A DNA stretch of 64,000 nt from Setoptus koraiensis (GCA_048013815.1 CM106586.1:15996001-16060000), one strand, 5' to 3'; positions 15,007 to 58,791 are shown, counted from the first letter of the stretch. Notes: generated from the sequence alone by a model not told the origin. Made by a program: numbers and translations.

Positions 15007-18000
15007 ACACTCGGGCAGCCAGAGTCGGGCTACATTATCGGCGGCACACATAGCACGCGCCTAATAACACGTCAGCTCGCATCTTACGTAACAATTATAA
15101 TCTAGCCAGCGCATAACGGATCGTCGCTCGCAGCGAGCTCAAGCGATAAACGCAACAAAAGCAACAGCGCCCGTCTTGGCGACCATCAAATCGGCGCGCA
15201 CACACACACGCACGCACACCCAGGTCGCACAAATACGCGGCCATATTGTTACATAATATCACGTTTATGGGCCCCATTGTATCATGATTTGTATTATTAT
15301 TGGCGCGAGTCGAACAGCCTGCGAGCGGGCTGTGCGAACCCTCTTCGCCGAATTAGAGGCTCGAACTGGCTGCGATTAGCCGACTGCGAGAACCCGCGAG
15401 ACTGTGAAACTGCGGCTGCCGGTGGGGGCCGCCACAGCGCGACCCGCCAACAAAGAGCTCAATCAAACTGCGACTGAGGCCGCCACCGGGCGCCCGAAAA
15501 AAACGCGCGGCCCCAAAAAAGCCAAATAGGAAGCCAACCAGCGCCCGTCTCATGATTGACGTCTATTTACTTTTTGAGGTGACTAGTTAACTGACTTGAG
15601 GCGCCCGATGCACGGGCCGCGCCGGCCGCCACTGCTCGCCACGGGTTGACGGTTAACTGGCGAAACTGGCCAATTTCGCGCGACACACAAACTGGCGACC
15701 AACGGGCGACCAACGGGCGACCAACTGGCGACCAACGGGCACCACATTCCAAGATCCTCTGTGTGGCCCCCTTCGGGCTCCTTCGGGCTGCACGCGGCCG
15801 CGTGTGGCCCCATTCGGGTCGCGCTGTCGCCCGACGCCCGTGGGTCGGGCCCAATATAGCCGAGACTCTGGCGGAGGCGCGCGGTTGCCTGGAGATTGGG
15901 CCCAATTCTCGACGCGGCGCCCAATTCTGGCGCCCAGATCGACGGCCGTCTGGGTCAATTGTCGGATTCGGCCGAATCCGGTGTCAAGCCGACGTAGTCG
16001 ACAATTTGCGAGCCGTCTGAGGGCCCAGTAGCCATAGCAGCCGTAGCAGCCGTAACAATGGGCCGGCGCCATAGTAATGCGAGTGCCATTAAAGTGGCAA
16101 GTATCAGACAACTGCCATTGTTTAATTGGCTGAAAAATAAGAGAGCGGGCCCCATTGTCGCTCAATGGGCCCATTTTTCATTTTTATCCCGCCGCTTGCT
16201 CCGCTCAGTCAATCAGTCGCTCAGTGTGAGCGCGACTGACTGACAAACTCGCTCGCGGAGAGCGCCGGATTCAGTTGCTCAAGCGGCGGATTCGGTTGCT
16301 TAGGCAACCGAATCCGTCGCTCCCCAAATGTGAGCTCTGTTGTGTCAGTCAGTGTGGCTAACAACTGCTCACTTTGGGCAACCCGAAGTCGGGGCCCCAA
16401 AGCGAGCTCCGGGGGCCGGCAGCCAGCGGGCAACGGTGACACGAGTTGTCACAGACAGACGCAAGGGATCGCAAGCGAGGCCGCAAACAACAACGACAAC
16501 CGTTCGACTGTTACGCCAAGTACCTGACTCGGGGCCCGGTGGCGCCAGCAAGTCAGCGAGATCCCCCCCCCTTGCGCCGTTGCAGCGCGGGCGCTTGAGT
16601 GAAAGTGACGCAAATCCGGCAGCGAGGGCCCCAGCAAATTCCCGTCTAGTCAATGCCAGTCGGTTTGTCTCACTGTCTGTTGCATAACGAGCGACAGGCG
16701 CGCAGCTTACACACTCAAACTCTTCAAACGACTGTCGCCCCACTAATGCTAATACGCCTAATATTACCCAATATTACGTAATATAACTGTTCAGTACTGC
16801 GTAGTATTATTACGTAATATTACGTAATATGAGAGCGGATATATGAGTTATAAGACTGTCGCTGGCGCCTTGTTCCGCGGCCGCCGAGTGTCTAATGACA
16901 ACTGTCAAGGCCACAACGGGCCCCGCCGCCGCCGCCGCCGACAACAACAACGACAAGGCGCGCTCGCACACCGAGTGAGAATCGGCGACAAATTCAGAGC
17001 CGGGCGCCGCAAGCGGCGACACCAAATAGCGGGCCGGTGAGTGGACGCCGGCCGACAATCATTAATTGATGCCAGCGAGCTCGACAGAATCGATCGACTT
17101 GCGGCCATGTCGCGAGTGACTCGCCAAATTAGGCGATGTCGGCTCAGCGTCATGATTGAACCTGGCAACGATCACTTCCGGTTTCGCGATTCTCAGCGAC
17201 TCGATCGCTCGTGGCGACCGCACCGCCACTTAATGGCACGCGTAATGGCAAACCGGTAGCCAACGGTAACCAGCTACAACTGAATCAACACGAGTCGCGG
17301 CCTACAAAATGCGCACATTGCGCGCCCGGAACCCGCCCTGTCTCTCTGAAATATCCCGCAAACATCCTGAAATATCCCCGAAACATTAGCCCCGACATGT
17401 GAATATCCTCGTTGGGTAGCTCGAAATCCATCAAAATCTGGCTCGGCGGTACTTTTCGTAAATATATATTTTCCATGTAAATAGTGTTTGCCGTTCTTGC
17501 GCCACCACGTCGGTCCTATTGACGGTGTCCGTGAGAGGGCGCCAAGTCAGATTAGATGCCATCTAACAGATGGGCAACATCAATTATTGGCCGCTTCTGA
17601 AATTTAAAGCAACGTCTGCAGCGCCCCTTTGCGAAAATATTGAAAAATAAAATTTTCTCCGGCGCACAACCACGGCGTCGGAGCGCTGTCGTCAAGTCGC
17701 ACGGATTTGGGGCCCACGGATTGGGGGCAAAAAGCAAAACGCTGGCCGTGTCAAGCCGTTCGACTCGATCGGATATCGCGATTAACCTAACCTGGGGTTA
17801 GTGGCCCGTTGTGGCGTCGCTTGGGCAATCTGTGTGTTTGCATGAGTTGATGGATTCGGGTGTCACCGGTACCCGGGCAGAGCTTCATTATCATAAATTA
17901 TGCCCCATTGTGAGCCGGATGCGCGGATAATTCCCGCGATGGTGATCCCCAAAACTGGCTAGGCTGGATTGACTCTGTGCCACCGAGTCAGTGGCCGGTT

Positions 18001-22991: not shown

Positions 22992-23274
22992 ATGAAGAGA
23001 CAGAACATACGTACCCTATCACTAATTGTTGGTACATTTACATATTTATTAGTCGGCGCGGCCATATTTGATTTTCTTGAATCGGATCATGAACTGCGCC
23101 AGAGAGAAGGCCTAGAGCTCATAGAATTGATGGTTAAAAGAAAATACAACATTAGTGATGAAGATTTTATAGTTCTCACAACCACCGTTATAAAGTCTGT
23201 TCCGCACAAAGCCGGCATACAATGGAAATTTTCAGGTGCCTTCTATTTCGCCACAACCGTACTGACCACGATAG
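22992..23274 (+). CDS. KCNK9: TASK-subfamily two-pore K+ channel (KCNK3/KCNK9, Task6/Task7, sup-9-like), coding exon 1 of 3
   Basis: Translates [31 protein letters not shown]...KYNIS...[25 protein letters not shown], the TASK N-terminus, M1, cap and P1. Ends at ATAG|GTGAGT (phase 1, inside the GYG codon). The symbol marks the family; one-to-one orthology is not established. Confidence 0.97.
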
Positions 23275-34000: not shown

Positions 34001-35645
34001 AATTGGACCGGCCATTCAATTGTTGATTGTCCGTTTGGGTGGCCAGGCGGCCCCTGTTACATGGCTGTTACGTAACTGGCCGCATTAGCGTACGAGTTGC
34101 CATATGCAGTTGGCCGGCTGATTGAGTTCATGTGTCGCTTCGAAATGGCTCAATTATCATCATTTGGCCTTTTTTTTTGTTGGCCCCATGGCCGACACAA
34201 TGGTCGAGAGAAAATAATCTCCAGCTTCAGCAACAGCAACAACAACAGCAACTGCCACTATTAGCGCCACTGGGGCCACGCGCAAAAAGTGCGCATCATT
34301 TCCATAAAAGGCACATAACATAAATAATATCTGAATAACTGTGACGTAACAGGGGCATTAGTTGACTGGCCCCGAGTGCCGGGCCAGTTTAAACGGGGCC
34401 TGGCCCCTTTTTTCCCCGTTGTCGGCTGTTGTCGGCCGTTGTCGGCTGTGTCATTTGGGGTATTTGCGAGCCGTTAGCCGGGCTAATAGAATGCTATTGT
34501 CACGGGGGGAGCCCCAAAGTGTGCCCAACGGCACATGTAATGGCTAATGGTGTTTGTCACAATTGCGCTCTAAATAAGCGAACAAGTGTCACAAACACGC
34601 ACAAATATGCCGTTAAATATGCTAACTAACTAACTGGGGCCCCTTGCTAACTGGTGCCGCTTGCTGTTGTGTGACTTTTGTCAGCTAAATATTGAGCTAA
34701 ATACATGCATGTACTAGCACGCAATACAGTTATATAACTAACTGCTGTTGTTGTTGTTGTTGTTGTTGGGTCATCATCAACACATGATGACACAACACGA
34801 CAACAACTGCATTAATGAATTGATTAATTGATGACAATGGCCGACAATTGTCATTGTCGCTTGTCGCTCGTTGACAGCTCGTGTTGCGCGACGCGCCAAC
34901 AACTGACCGCTATCAATTGCACTCTTGCCAGTGTCAGTGTGTGACGTGCTTGCACTAATGATTTACAGCAACAGCAACAGCAGCAGCAGTTATGTAACAA
35001 TTGCACTTAACAACTTGTTTGCCTCAAATCGACTGAACGTGACCCCTTGCTAATGGCGCGCGCTCTAAGCGGCCTCCCATTGCGTAATGGCCGCCCCAAA
35101 TTGACCAGAGGCTCAGCTGACACCAGTGGCGAGTTGCGGCCGCTGGTGTCAACTTGTCACAAGTCACAACTTGCGCCTCACAAGTAACAACTTGCGCCTC
35201 ACAAGTCACAACTCGCGACTCACAAGTCACAACTCGCGACTCACAAGTCGGGCCCAACGAGGGCCCCAATTGCCGGACAGCGAGTTTGCAACGGAACAGA
35301 CGCTTTACACTTTATTATTTGTCTTGCAATTTTGTTAATTTCCGGCATTCATCGGCGGGCCGTTTCTGCGCTCATTTGCGCGCCATTCTGTGCTGATGAT
35401 CGCCCATCACTGATCGGGCGCGGCCGGTCATCGCCCGGCGAGCACAATGGCGAAAACAAGTGCCGCCTCTCAGCTGTCGCAACTCGACATTTCGGCGTGT
35501 CGACATTTCGTCATATCGCCGAGTCGATATTTCGACGTTTCGACATTTCGTCATTCCGAAGAGTCGACGTTTCGTCATTTCGACGAGTCGACGAGCCGAT
35601 ACTGCGTCACTTCGGCGAGTCGAAATATCGACGGGTCAATATTAC

Positions 35646-47300: not shown

Positions 47301-49100
47301 GCCAGATCAGAGTTGGTGCGGCAATTGTAAATTCGAAATTGCGCGCATTAGCAGCACATTTGCACTGTCGGTCGCGGCGCTCGAAATGGGGCCAGCGAGC
47401 TTGTCTATTTATTTGTTGAGCAATTTACTGGTGCGGGGTCACGGGCAAAACCGAAGAGCGGAAAAACTGCAAACTTTGCAGCGCCAAGAGTCAGACGGAG
47501 TGACACCCAAACAATTGGCCAAGCCCGCCATCTAGACACACCATGAACAGTGTTGCATGAGTGGGGGCCCCATTTAGCTGTAACGATTATCATGCAATGT
47601 AACAGTTGTAATCTTAGTCGATGGTCGTTGCCGATAACGATGCCAGTCGATGGTGCAAGTTAAATGGATGATGCGCTCGAGCGGCCGGTTAAACGATGAT
47701 ATATTATCATGTATTCTCGCCGGCCGAAGCCGGCCAAAAGCGTTGCCGTTTGAGCCGAACACCATTTCCATATTGAGCCGGCTCAAATAAGCCGGCCAGG
47801 ATATGGATGTAACCGGACAGATATCATCAGGCCGTTCTGCTACACTGACCCGCCGATGCGCGGCCCAGTCCCGCCGATGCGCGCCCAGTCCGGTCCGGTC
47901 CGGTCCGGTGGCAAACAAGCCGACCAACACTGGCCGTGTGCGGCCCAAATGACCCGCACGCGGCAAGAAACAACAACGCCCGACGCGGGCCGCCACATCG
48001 GGCTGCCCGATCTCAGCCCAAGAGGGGCCCGCGGAAAGGCGGCAAAATAAATAATAATAACAAGCCACGAACAAGTCGATAAGTGTTGTCGACGCATCGC
48101 TCGCTCGTCGCAACTTTTGCTCAGATTACAATCTTGGCCCGACGCGCCCAACGCAAACATTGGCGCCGAGCGGCCCCAACGGATTGATCGCGAGCGGATC
48201 GGGCCGCGCTATCAGTGTTGCATCGCTAATATATTCCGACGCGATTCTCACTCGTCATGAGGCCTGACGGACACGCCGACGAGACAACCTGCGTTACGCA
48301 AGTTGTACAGGCAGCGCACCCAAGTGTTGCCGAAATGGGGGCCGAGCATGGGGCCCGCCGTCGGCCGCAAACACCACGCAATCGGCAATTGGCTAGGTGA
48401 GCGCGGTCGACAGTCTGGCCGCTAGTTGACGGTCTGGCCGACAGTTGATACTTTGGTGCCTCAAACATGGGCCGGCGGCAATGTGGGCCGCTCATCGAAA
48501 CAAAAGAATAACTCAATAAAACTTGATTGCATCATTGCATTATCAATTTAGTCGCAAATTGCATTGTGTCGGCGGGGCACGACTTATATCACTGTGTGAA
48601 TCGCGTTTGAATCGGTGTCGTGACGTCTTGCGGACGAAGCTGCAGGCACACTGTATTCACAAGTGGATATACCCGGTATATCATATACGATTGCACGATG
48701 CGCGACGCACATGTGCATCGAAGGGGGCGCGATGCCCGGCCCCGGGCCCGGCAAGTGAACAGAGTGGCTAGATTGCAATCGTATCACATCTAATCTCATC
48801 GGATGGAATTGAATTGCGCTCCATGGTCGCGGCTGCATAATGCCTTTTTTCTCCCTTTTTGCCCCACTCTCTGTCTGGTTATCGGGTCCGCCTGGGTCCG
48901 CCCGGGTCGTCGGGCTATCGGGCCGCCTGGGCCCGCGACACGTCCGAGCCAGCGGGCCGTCGGGCGGTCGGCAGCAACGGGCCGGGCGCGGGTGTTGCGG
49001 GCACTTGTGGGCTCGCCGTAATTGCAGCGGCCGCAATGATGTTTGCCATGTTTATATTGCAGTCAGCATTGTTTTTAATCGCGCCTCGCGGGGCCCCGCA

Positions 49101-49160: not shown

Positions 49161-50916
49161 AGTGAGTGCAACTTACTCACGAGCATATTTGCGGCCAGAT
49201 TGGATCTGCGGCCGCGCGACCGTCTCGGATCGGAGTGTTTTGCTCGCGAGTCGCAACAAGCAAACAGAGCGTGATCATTTCATTGTCGCTCGCTTGATCC
49301 CCTCGCCGGGCACAGTTTGCCAGGGGCCCCTCCGTTAATCTGTTGCCCTGTTGCGGGCGCAGAAATTAGATTGCATCTGCTCAGCGAAAGCTGCTTGGGC
49401 CCGGTGGCGGGCGCAATGCCGGCCGCCGGCCACTGGCGCTGGTCCGGCGGCCGGCATTGGGACGGGCAGCGGGCCGATATTGTCAAGTTTGCGCGCCGGG
49501 CCGCTTTGCGATGACCGATCAATCATGCTGACAGGATGATGGCCGCTCCTCAATTGAATAATGACGAGCCCGCTGATCATGTGCGCGTGTCAGCGCCACC
49601 ACAACGCGGGCGCCAACGGCAGCAGCAACAACGACGGCAGCAACAACGACAACCACGACGACAACGGCTGCCACTAACTAACTCGCGAGCAGTGCGCAGC
49701 AGTCGAGCATTGTCTCGTGGCCGCCACCGCGGCCGATCCGCCAAGAGCGCGGGTAGCGGCGCCGCCGAGACCGCGGTGCGTCCATGGCGCGGGCCTCTGG
49801 CGGCGGACTGAACGGGCGAGCAGCGGCGCTGGCGGCGGACGGAACGGGCAGTTGCTAACGAGCCAGCGAGTGCACCTCTAAACGGTCCGCTCCGGTCGGC
49901 GGGCGCCAGTCGCGAGCGGCCAGCGGCCAGTCGCCAGACAGCGAGCCCCCGGATCAGCGGCCGTCCGGGGCCCGGCTGGCAGATGTGTGCAACCAGATAT
50001 GGGCCCGCGGCCGGCGCTGCTGCTTATATACTTGATTGATCACCTCTCCTTTTTTATCAACTTGCTCGCGATTCGGGCCGCTCGCTGGCTTGCTGGTCTC
50101 TGGCAAGCGGGCCTCAAGTGTCGCCTCGGCCGTGTCTTGTGCCTCGTCTTGGCGGCATTGTGCCAGTGGCCGTCTATCTGGCAATCGTATCTGTCGCATC
50201 TGTCGCGTCTGTCGTATCTGTCGTATCTGTCGTATCGCTCGCCGAAACCGTTTGCCCATGCCAGCACACAAACCGCCAGCGCAATAAACTGGCCGGCCGG
50301 CCGGCCGGATAAACTGCAAACGGCCTAATCTAGTCACTGGGCGCCCGAATCTGTTTTTTAATCTGTTCTGAGAGCCATTTGATTGGCATCGGGCATCGAT
50401 TAACACGCGCAACGTATCGCCGGCGAGCGGCCAGCGGCTAATGGTCTCGCCATGGTTCGCTCGCGGCCCCATGAATGCCGGCCCGATGCTAATGAGCTGC
50501 CGGCCTGCTCAATCTCTATTAATTTCGCACTAAGTTTCACTCAAGTCTTGCCTCGCCTATTAATCACAGCCCCGTTGTTGAATCGCTCTTGTCATCCCGT
50601 CTTGAATTTGTTCTCGCTCTAAATCCCGGACCCGGAACACACCGACCCGACAACGACACCGCCCAACCGGACATTGACCACCACGGTGACGTGTGCTCGC
50701 CGTGGCAACCATCGACCCTGTCGGACGCCAACGGAACGCGCTCGGACGCCACCAAAACGCGCACGAACGCGCTCAAATGCGGACATTCGCGGAAAAACTC
50801 GCGCCGACCCGCACCGACCCGCGCCGACCCGCGCTATCCCGGGCCATCCCAACGACGACGCAAACCCAACGACGACGCAAACCCACAAATGACGCAACAA
50901 ACAACTTAATGCACAG

Positions 50917-51092
50917 GTTACGGACATTCCACTCCGGCCACCCTGGGCGGCAGGTCGTTTTGCATGATATACGCGCTCATCGGCATACCCCTGGGTCTGA
51001 TAATGTTCCAATCGATAGGTGAGCGGCTGAACACGTTTGTCGCCTGGGTGCTCAAGCACGCCAAGCGCTGCTTCAAGGCGAAGAACCCCGAG
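50917..51092 (+). CDS. KCNK9: TASK channel coding exon 2 (GYG filter, M2)
   Basis: Not called in the ORF track. Reads (G)[58 protein letters not shown]; 176 nt, bounded by CAG| and |GTAAGT. Confidence 0.96.
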
Positions 51093-55457
<4,365 letters not shown>

Positions 55458-55507: not shown

Positions 55508-56011
55508 CTGCAATTTTCTGCTTTCTCGGTTATCTAATTAGCAGCCCACGCGATTCATTGGTAATTAGTTTCAAGTGGGTGCACCGAAAAGTTTCGCAAC
55601 AATTAGTGTCCATGTGTCGACACTAATTGTTGATTTGACTATTGTTGTCGTCTTTTCCCATCTTGTCTTATTCGCTTTATTTATATTTTCTGTTTTCGTT
55701 TTTCGTCGGCCACATAACCCGGATATAATCATTGGCATCACATGTAATATGATTTCTTTCGTGATACACGAGATATCCACCGCAACCCGACTATCCACAA
55801 CCAACTATTTATCGCTTGGCGGTAGCGCCGCGACGGGGGCGTTGAAGACACACCCCTGCGGCTGCTCTGACGGCTTGTGAGCGGGACGTACGGGTGCATG
55901 AAAAGCATGTGTTTCAGTTGTTGTCCTGATGAAAAATTGTCTTGAAAAATCTCAAGTTTACTCAAGTCGTCTACGTTGATCAGGATAATAGATCAACAAC
56001 AGATCGCTGCA

Positions 56012-56800
56012 ATGGGCCTAAGAGATAGAGATCATTGGGAGGACCATTATACGCAGGAGTTGAGGAACTTCAGCGAGGACGGAGACGAGGGCGAGATTTG
56101 GTTTGGTAGGAATCTTAACAAAAACATAGCCAATTGGTTGTATGAGCGCATAAAATCAAATTTGTCAGACACAACAACACAATCACCAAAACAGATTCGA
56201 GTCGTTGATATTGGTTGTGGCAATTGTCAGCTCTTGATCACTCTAAACAATATCATCACTAAAGCGCCATATTCTACATCAAAACAACAATTGCAACTCA
56301 ATTTGCTAGGCATAGATTTCGCGCCGTCAGCGGTTGAATTGTCAAGGCAAATTCTGCTGGCCTCTCCAAATGAACAAGACCGTAATGTAAGAGTACAACA
56401 GTGTGATTTCTTAGAATTTAATCAGATAAAGGAGGTTGCAACACCAAAAGGGGAGACATATGATTATGTCTTGGACAAGGGCACCTTCGACGCAATATGT
56501 CTGATAGCTGAAGGCCAAAACTCTGGTGAGCTCCCGATTGCGATAGAGAGATATAAAAGGTCACTGGGCTTGTTGCTTCATCTCAGCAGTATCTTCATTC
56601 TGGCCTCATGCAACAATACCGAGGAAGAGTTGGTCAAACTTTTCTGTGGGCCAATGCCACGTGATGCGAATAGTATGACAGGTCACTCATTAAAAACTAT
56701 AGGCAAAATTCAAACACCGACCTTCAGTTTTGGAGGAAAAACTGGATCTCAGGTGGCATGTTTAATATTTGAGATGGTGCTGGAAGACAGCAACACATGA
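56012..56800 (+). CDS. EEF1AKMT2: EEF1A lysine methyltransferase 2 (METTL10/Efm4 family)
   Basis: HWEDHYTQELRNFSEDGDEGEIWFG, SAM motif VVDIGCGNC, LGIDFAPSAV, VLDKGTFDAI, FILASCNNTEEEL, PTFSFGGKTG. First in-frame ATG is 56012 (the track starts at a TTG at 55976); a short upstream exon cannot be excluded. Confidence 0.93.
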   Translation: MGLRDRDHWEDHYTQELRNFSEDGDEGEIWFGRNLNKNIANWLYERIKSNLSDTTTQSPKQIRVVDIGCGNCQLLITLNNIITKAPYSTSKQQLQLNLLGIDFAPSAVELSRQILLASPNEQDRNVRVQQCDFLEFNQIKEVATPKGETYDYVLDKGTFDAICLIAEGQNSGELPIAIERYKRSLGLLLHLSSIFILASCNNTEEELVKLFCGPMPRDANSMTGHSLKTIGKIQTPTFSFGGKTGSQVACLIFEMVLEDSNT

Positions 56801-56975
56801 TTTGATAAGTTTATGGTTAGCTCATTCGAGCAGCCACTCTATTCCATCCTTTGATCAAGATCCGTCCGAATCGATCAATTCAATCAGACGATCATTATGA
56901 CAGAACTCTCATAGTTCTACTGTCGGGCTTTGGGTGTAGAAAGTCCTTTCCAAATGAAATTTTCCATGGATACAC

Positions 56976-57001
56976 TCAGACTGTATTTGATCTGCAAAAT
57001 T
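56976..57001 (-). CDS. NELFCD: NELF-C/D (TH1-like) terminal coding exon 3
   Basis: Minus-strand donor ATTG|GTAAGT at 57101 and acceptor TTCCGACTTTACAG ending at 57002 (100-nt intron) give ...TTFI-EFCRSNTV*, resembling the FIAHCKSN end of NELF-D. Confidence 0.8.
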
Positions 57002-57101
57002 CTGTAAAGTCGGAAGAAGACCTGGAGTTAGAACAATCTGTCTCTCACATAAGGTGTTTATACGCGTGCAATTCGTCACGTGTAAACCTATAGCAACTTA
57101 C

Positions 57102-58791
57102 CAATAAAAGTAGTAACAAGTTGATGCTGCTCTTTGTTTTCATTCTTGAGGTTGCCTGTTATCTCATTGGCCTCTATTAAAGGTAGTAGCATATGAATAA
57201 ATTCTTGAGTGTACGGAGGCTCGATAATTTCCAACACTTCCGTTACGAAATATCGTATGAGCGAGACATCAGTATCTTGTTTTTGCCAACATTTTCTAAT
57301 ATAATTTAACACGGGCACTACATAATGTAAACTAACTAGATGAACCATTCTATCTAGTATGACCCTCTTGACTTGAAGCTGCTGCAAAACTTCCATATCC
57401 TCTGGTTCTGCCTCCATGAGTTCAATCAGTAGTTCTAAAACTTTCTCATGCAATGTATTGTGATTAGTACTTATCTCATCTAGAAAGGCCAGATGGATAG
57501 GTGTGTGATCTGTTGATAATTGAAAGTAGCTAGGTTCAGATACAGTGTGTCTGACCCAGTGCAGGATACCCATAGCTACAACTGGCATTTTAATTGATTG
57601 GTACAATTGTTGTACCTCACATAATAACTCATTAGATCCCTTCTTTTCCTGACAAATAGTAGCTACTTTATCCAAAGTTTGCTCTGTCTGTTCTAACTGT
57701 TCCTTGTTGGCGCTTCGTCTATTACCTTTCTTTGTGTGTTCCACAACACTTGCAGCATAAGCCAGAAGGTATATGTATTTGGGTCGATGTTCTGGATTTA
57801 TCTTAAATCCTGGTTTAAAAAGTGAATTCAGAATTAGATCAAGAAATAATGGAATTCGTATTAAGGCAACAGGAGGTGGATCCGACGATTGATATTCTTT
57901 GTACAATGTTGTTATATCTGCTGGGTTGAGATAATTTCTTGACAACATGGCTGACAAAGCCATGTGTACTCTCGGGTATGTTGTTGTTCCCATTAGGGAC
58001 ATTGAGATCGGAGTTGCATCGTGTCTATTCTGTTGAGCGTACTTGGCTACCTCTTGGGCTATTCTTTTAATATTTGCAGAGCCTTTACTTTCTTTACCTA
58101 AAACATGGAGTATGGCCTGACTGTATAAATATGTATGCTCGCCATGACAAACCATTTTACAAAACTCCAATAGATGTTTCTCTGCGTCGGATTCATTACC
58201 CTCCAGGATACTCATAATAGATGTCTTGAGTATGCGAGCAAACACTTCTAGTTGTTGTGACGCGGTAGATATGCTTGTTATCTCGGCTTGGAAACCGGCA
58301 TCTGATATCAATTTTATGGTGAAAATCAACATAAGACAGTCGGGATACATTTCCGCCAGTTTATAGATCAATGACCGCCAGGGTGGATGCGTTATCATCT
58401 CTGTCAGCCAAATAGGTGCCACTTCGTCGTCGGCGAATATTGAATCAGCTTTCTTAGGGTCGAAATGTTTGATTATCATCTGCTTTAGATGGTCCTCAAC
58501 AAGGGCCTGCACATCCTTCACTTCCATTCCCGTCATTATGAGCCACTCAGCGAGAAGATTTACCATCTGAGCTGTTGCAGTATAATTTTCTGCCAGTAAT
58601 TCAATCGCCGAGTCTGGTGTTCCTCCTGCTTTGAAGAATCGCTTTAGTTGGCCAATGATGCCTGGCTCCATAATATAATCATTTCTAGATAATATTTCCT
58701 TGCAATCTTGTTGGACGGCTTCGGGAGACAGGTCCTCATCTTCTTCGTCCTCATGATCTTCATTTCCAGATTCATTTGAATGTTCTGGAGA
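57102..58791 (-). CDS. NELFCD: NELF-C/D (TH1-like) coding exon 2
   Basis: DYIMEPGIIGQLKRFFKAGG...LLAENYTATAQMVNLLAEWLI...IIKHFDPKKADSIF...HPPWRSLIYKLAE...IRYFVTEVLEII. The frame is open 40 codons upstream of the track's ATG, back to acceptor CTCTAAACAG at 58792. Confidence 0.95.

Follow-up and report, generated by a model that had tools for sequence, protein, structure and literature searches.

A probable AG-exclusion zone of a distant-branch-point 3' splice site before the pore exon of a mite potassium channel gene

Immediately before the acceptor AG of a giant intron in the mite Setoptus koraiensis lie several hundred nucleotides without a single AG dinucleotide. The question raised by this locus is whether the spliceosome would reach the following exon from a branch point at the far edge of that stretch, or whether the stretch is AG-free for reasons unrelated to splicing. 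Vertebrate distant-branch-point exons with AG-exclusion zones include alpha-tropomyosin exon 3, GABBR1 exon 23, PTB exon 11 and HTR4 (Gooding et al. 2006, PMC1431707), and the same paper states the rule that an AG too close to the branch is bypassed. We analyzed the whole of a 64,000-nt stretch of DNA (GCA_048013815.1, CM106586.1:15996001-16060000), referred to here as the window, together with the orthologous gene of related mites.

The plus strand of the window carries a TASK-type (KCNK3/9-like) K2P potassium channel gene. Its assignment is made on the encoded protein, which has two pore domains with the filters GYG and GFG (TIGYG, split by intron 1, and TIGFG, in exon 3) and is closest to KCNK3 and KCNK9, the best solved-structure matches (E about 1e-37). 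PF07885 is present on the proteins of the relatives. The parts of the gene are as follows.

22992 to 23274, plus strand: coding part of exon 1, from the ATG to the first base of the first glycine codon of GYG, placed by open reading frame and donor
23275 to 50916, plus strand: intron 1, 27,642 nt, phase 1, GTGAGT...CAG
50915 to 50916, plus strand: acceptor AG of exon 2, CAG/GTTACGG, same junction in six relatives
50917 to 51092, plus strand: exon 2, encoding (G)YGHSTP...KAKNPE, from the pore-1 filter to M2
51093 to 51392, plus strand: intron 2, 300 nt, GTAAGT...CAG, with an AG-free zone of 77 nt and TTAAC at -40
51393 to 55457, plus strand: exon 3, encoding M3-P2-M4 and a long Q-rich tail to the stop codon

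For comparison, we used the conserved beginning of exon 3 as a word query, which gave six related proteins in assemblies from Logan, JGI and ENA, and the corresponding contigs were compared. These eriophyoid-type relatives (L001, L004, L005, L006, L007 and L008) are about equally distant, being 87 to 92% identical in the channel core and without similarity in the tail. A metagenome scan for closer relatives returned only contigs already in the comparison and distant K2P genes.

The acceptor of exon 2 could be placed precisely. Exon 1 ends in ...TTVLTTIG with the donor G/GTGAGT, and the contig of L008, which includes exon 1, has the same exon end and the same donor. Exon 2 opens with the last two bases of the first glycine codon of GYG, and no earlier start is possible for it, since its reading frame meets a TAA three codons upstream of the acceptor. 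In all six relatives exon 2 begins at the same junction, AG/G(N)TAYGG, and the position of intron 1 is conserved in seven genomes. This junction, shared by seven genomes, rebuilds the TIGYG filter, which strongly supports 50915-50916 as the acceptor used for exon 2. The gene model could nevertheless be wrong, with exon 2 joined otherwise or the AG-free zone belonging to another transcript or to a regulatory element such as an internal promoter or a CpG-rich element. The zone is indeed rich in CpG (49 observed, 29 expected), but the exact restoration of the filter, the stop three codons upstream, the AG/G junction of the seven genomes and the shared exon 1 donor all speak against this, as does the lack of any open reading frame or repeat family in the zone, and we regard a mistaken model as highly improbable.

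Two further possibilities for the giant intron were searched for and rejected or left without a candidate. AGGTRAGT is absent from the sense strand of intron 1, which holds no strong recursive site, and recursive splicing was rejected on this ground. A nested gene or hidden coding exon was sought in intron 1 and in 1-22000, and no credible open reading frame appeared in either. Together, 1-22000 and 23275-50916 amount to about 50 kb without a recognizable coding frame, GC-rich (about 56%) and with many short tandem arrays, an unusually gene-poor block around a neuronal channel gene for a streamlined genome. Downstream of the channel gene, 55976-58671 of the window holds a methyltransferase-like open reading frame and a minus-strand frame of 527 amino acids, unlike the neighbor in L001, L004, L005 and L008, where a PRP1_N (PRPF6-like) gene lies on the strand opposite to the channel gene. 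A search for sequencing runs with this locus turned up none of RNA; the three that match are represented by DNA contigs, since intron 2 is present in a contig. Two of them, X2 and X3, cover 51921-55016 at low depth, with the region of the AG-free zone (50552-51103) outside this coverage, and show roughly a dozen single-nucleotide differences along with small indels in repeats, pointing to another strain or population, either of this mite or of one very close to it.

We then characterized the AG-free sequence itself, which consists of the following elements.

50570 to 50914, plus strand: AG-free zone, 345 nt between the AG at 50568-50569 and the AG at 50915-50916
50721 to 50770, 50800 to 50850 and 50848 to 50897 (span 50721 to 50897), plus strand: tandem arrays of AG-free units with periods of 21, 10 and 17 nt, respectively

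The two flanking AGs confirm the zone at the extent first proposed for it, and neither strand of the window has a longer AG-free run. Its composition (A 90, C 135, G 75, T 45) predicts 19.5 AGs, and none of 20,000 shuffles went below 7. Every G in the zone is preceded by C, T or G (49, 14 and 12 cases), whereas GA occurs 25 times and CT 13 times; with G never following A while both of these dinucleotides are present, the depletion is specific to strand and to base order. Upstream of the zone AG density is normal for the intron, with six AGs in 50426-50568.

The initial annotation had put the expected number at about 20, which agrees with base composition but is generous. AG is depleted throughout intron 1 (observed/expected 0.69, and likewise in the 2-kb flanks of the zone), 148 of the 345 nt belong to the three tandem arrays, and the 197 unique nucleotides, which are also AG-free, predict only about 6.5 AGs. 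For its first 50 nt the zone reads as ordinary intron with T present; the sequence beyond about 50621 is T-poor, A/C/CpG-rich and of low complexity. These features raise the main alternative, in which the zone is a by-product of A/C/CpG-rich low-complexity DNA, its AG-free state has no function, and a degenerate branch sits in the usual place, for example in the ATGAC at about -24. An AG-free repeat accounts for part of the zone only, however: the 151 nt of unique sequence at its 5' end are AG-free as well, where base composition alone predicts 6.6 AGs, and GA and CT are undepleted. Between adjacent tandem copies there are 16 mismatches, none of which creates an AG where 2.5 would be expected to do so, a weak indication of selection; of all possible substitutions, 16% would create an AG. 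The zone was also searched for as a copy of a dispersed repeat, and this was rejected, there being no other match in the window or in the loci of the relatives.

To judge chance, we used the AG gaps of the window itself, on both strands (about 6,000 gaps), as an empirical null. The longest AG-free runs are 345, 277, 253, 237 and 235 nt. Runs of at least 300 nt are thus not common at random intronic positions in the window, while runs of 235 to 277 nt do occur and are borne by repeats, so that length alone is about what the tail of some 6,000 gaps would lead one to expect. The other long runs that we examined (175 to 277 nt) lie on tandem repeats away from any exon, which speaks for the low-complexity explanation, and zones with zero counts of CG, CC or GG and of similar surprise also exist in the window. 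What that explanation leaves to coincidence is position: the longest AG-free run in the window ends at one of only two identifiable acceptors, which is unlikely by chance, at roughly 1 to 3 in 10,000.

YTAAY, the motif used below in the search for branch sites, stands at the 5' edge of 5 of the 15 longest AG-free runs on the plus strand and of 1 of the 15 longest on the minus strand. Four plus-strand runs of 146 to 175 nt (48770-48947, 34728-34876, 15599-15752 and 55605-55771) have the motif at the 5' edge with no known exon after it, and such runs may be unannotated acceptors or may have arisen by chance.

If the zone is an exclusion zone, a branch site would be expected at or near its 5' edge. 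YTAAY was sought in the zone and in the 15 nt that precede it, with the final 12 nt left out. The sites of interest around the zone and the acceptor are listed here.

50325 to 50564, plus strand: cluster of seven YTAAY motifs, one per 38 nt, compared with one per 346 nt across the intron
50558 to 50564, plus strand: best candidate branch site, TATTAAT (TTAAT at 50560-50564), with putative branch A50563, 353 nt before G50916
50568 to 50569, plus strand: last AG before the zone, 5 to 6 nt after A50563, presumed bypassed
50583 to 50620, plus strand: moderately pyrimidine-rich stretch, 29 of 38 nt
50619 to 50623, plus strand: second candidate branch site, CTAAA, with A50622 at -294 and a C/A-rich spacer after it, as in relatives
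50906 to 50910, plus strand: near TTAAT, with A50909 7 nt before acceptor G50916, an unlikely near branch site

The search returned a single YTAAY at the end of intron 1, the TTAAT at 50560-50564. TATTAAT stands 6 nt upstream of where the zone begins, and its offset from the edge (-8) is similar to those at exon 2 of L007 (-11) and in intron 2 of L005 (-10). The layout proposed at the outset is therefore present: a branch-like motif at the zone edge, an AG 5 to 6 nt after its adenosine, a long AG-free stretch and then the AG at the exon. TTAAT is the weakest YTAAY variant, and its placement at the edge is less surprising than it would otherwise be because it is the last of seven clustered motifs. 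Within the cluster every YTAAY except the last is followed by an AG within 3 to 54 nt. Just 5' of the zone, in this cluster, YTAAY/TAAT motifs reach about nine times their density in the intron; they could be spare or decoy branch sites, each with its own AG, or homeodomain-type TAAT sites of an intronic enhancer. CTAAA at 50619-50623 is a candidate branch site by resemblance. The pyrimidine-rich stretch after A50563 had been singled out as a tract; its count of 29 in 38 holds, but it is not a distinct element, being no richer in pyrimidine than the 60 nt upstream and interrupted by a purine every 3 to 7 nt.

To place these motifs in context, we examined the 3' splice sites of the same gene in the seven eriophyoid-type genomes, with expectations drawn from the background of each locus. 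Across the 13 comparison acceptors we counted 24 copies of YTAAY, mostly CTAAC, against an expectation of 3.6 (Poisson P about 1e-12), and at least one copy is found at 12 of the 13. At most of these acceptors the most upstream YTAAY is separated from the zone's 5' edge by about 12 nt at most; in L001 the last AG is followed directly by CTAAC. By comparison, no YTAAY occurs between -12 and -352 of the exon 2 acceptor in the window, where only the degenerate ATGAC at about -24 is found. This regularity weighs against a conventional branch beside low-complexity DNA, although intron 2 of L006, one of the 13, likewise has no usable YTAAY.

In intron 2 of L005 (2566-2702), AGAG stands at +6/+8 after a perfect CTAAC at -40; protein homology shows that this AGAG is not the acceptor, so that close AGs are skipped in this lineage. 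The AG at 50568-50569, similarly close to A50563, is presumed to be bypassed by analogy with this intron and with the vertebrate rule (PMC1431707). The use of the first AG and the skipping of those too close to the branch, taken over by the initial annotation from vertebrates, are seen among the 13 comparison acceptors themselves.

The intron 1 acceptor has no pyrimidine tract (42% pyrimidine from -27 to -4), as had been remarked, but this is a property of the lineage and not of intron 1. When we pooled 14 acceptors (50916 and 51392 in the window and those of exons 2 and 3 in L001 and L004 to L008), positions -27 to -4 contained 40% A, 30% C, 10% G and 20% T, and none of the 14 has a polypyrimidine tract; CAG/G is present at 12 of them. 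The pattern across these 14 acceptors fits a branch-anchored selection of the first AG. A full-text search of the accessible literature gave no description of branch points, pyrimidine tracts or exclusion zones in mites, and the Aculops genome paper does not mention these features.

The TTAAT 7 nt before the acceptor is present as had been pointed out (A50909 relative to G50916), and a branch there would have a short, yeast-like spacing and would make the AG-free run irrelevant. We know of no animal precedent for so short a branch-to-AG spacing. The motifs at the orthologous exon 2 acceptor of the relatives lie between -17 and -148, none of them nearer, and the skipping of AGs 6 to 8 nt after CTAAC in this lineage argues that a spacing of this size is too short; the AG-free run would again be left to coincidence. 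Spacings of 2 to 8 nt do occur in some intron-poor yeasts (PMC2483917), and intron 2 of L006 (915-1057) ends in TTAACAG with no other YTAAY, so that it has either a non-consensus branch or an extremely short branch-to-AG spacing. On balance a branch at A50909 appears improbable.

We next considered whether the length of the zone is conserved. The AG-free zones before the orthologous exon 2 of the six relatives measure 155, 92, 85, 60, 45 and 37 nt, and those before exon 3 in the relatives 30 to 155 nt, compared with 77 nt in the window. The length of 345 nt is thus not conserved among these six relatives, all of them distant. The initial annotation had linked the zone to giant introns. In L008 the orthologous intron 1, of 9,223 nt, has a zone of 60 nt and the 367-nt intron 2 one of 155 nt, so zone length is not linked to intron size and that part of the proposal falls away. 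Nor does "exceptionally long" hold in absolute terms, since vertebrate distant branch points have been verified by mutation at 288 nt and zones of 590 to 1126 nt predicted (PMC1431707). Long spacers recur among the relatives: L005 has CTAAC at -148, and in intron 2 of L008 (9583-9949) CACTAAC at -105 is accompanied by a 155-nt C-rich, CpG-bearing AG-free spacer, an architecture like that of the zone in the window.

The short zones of the orthologues are also the signature of a human example in which an AG-free zone of 369 nt is only a repeat, with the branch at -17 and a mouse orthologue of 31 nt (PMC1431707). The mite zone resembles this example in that much of it is repeat and its orthologues are far shorter. 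It differs in lacking a good branch motif in the conventional position, in the AG-free state of its unique 5' part and in the AGs upstream, which are not widely spaced. With the evidence of the preceding sections taken together, we consider it rather unlikely that the zone is a by-product of low-complexity DNA.

The reading that we favor, and that is probably correct, is that the 345 nt form a true AG-exclusion zone of a distant-branch-point 3' splice site. The branch site paired with U2 would be of the YTAAY type and would lie where the zone begins, at A50563 or alternatively at the CTAAA near 50622. We infer A50563 to be the likeliest branch adenosine; the AG 5 to 6 nt after it would be too close and would be skipped. 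After the first catalytic step the spliceosome would take the first usable AG, at 50915-50916, 294 to 353 nt away. A new AG arising within the zone would create a premature acceptor in the exon for the channel pore and would be removed by selection, so that the zone could be lengthened by AG-free insertions only, and would have grown by AG-free tandem duplications. Growth by AG-free insertions alone would explain why the zone consists largely of AG-free tandem arrays. Low complexity and selection would then be complementary explanations, and the length of the zone would reflect drift under a filter and not an adaptation to a giant intron.

A distant-branch-point splice site in this mite would share several features with the vertebrate exons. 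A long AG-free region adjoins the exon while AG density upstream is normal; a branch-like motif marks the 5' end of the zone and falls inside the 15 nt allowed ahead of the last AG; and the close AG appears to be bypassed and the first downstream AG used, which for the mite is read from the sequence. There are also differences. Pyrimidines after the candidate branch form a weak tract, and where the vertebrate exons have a pyrimidine-rich region that binds regulators the mite has an A/C/CpG-rich tandem repeat. Mite exon 2 carries no sign of alternative splicing and, because it encodes the pore filter, must be constitutive. GABBR1 and PTB keep the length of their zones in orthologues, unlike the mite gene. 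The distant-branch-point kind being known from vertebrates, the mite locus is a probable further case; as an example it is moderately strong, since it is a single locus whose zone length is unconserved.

Intron-poor eukaryotes have a strong branch consensus (Irimia and Roy 2008, PMC2483917). The mite lineage resembles them in being intron-poor, in its strong CTAAC-like motif, in the lack of a pyrimidine tract at the acceptor and in the use of the first AG after the branch; it differs in that the host is an animal and in its highly variable distances (about 33 to 148 nt in the relatives, possibly 353 nt here). Long branch-to-AG spacings in yeast are aided by RNA structure (PMC3239191). The mite zone differs in this respect, with no stabilizing structure predicted: the fold of 50550-50925 was no more stable than shuffles (z = 0.18), and an RNA structure joining branch and acceptor was rejected as support for the distant branch.

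More tentatively, eriophyoid mites may, after losing most of their introns, have come to a lineage-wide, yeast-like intron ending. A strong CTAAC-type branch would be the main 3' signal, with no pyrimidine tract at the acceptor and the first AG used, and the distance between branch and AG would drift from about 30 to several hundred nucleotides; AG-free zones linked to acceptors would then be found genome-wide, with intron 1 (about 350 nt) as an extreme. Gene finders trained on ordinary acceptors will mis-score such sites, and long AG-free runs could be used for locating hidden acceptors in these genomes. If the branch of intron 1 does lie about 350 nt from the acceptor, few distances proposed for a constitutive, essential exon would be longer, and this one would be in an animal stripped of most of its introns. 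Combined with the pattern of the lineage, it would offer in the eriophyoid mites a natural system in which to study how far the second-step search for an AG can reach and what replaces U2AF-type recognition of the pyrimidine tract.
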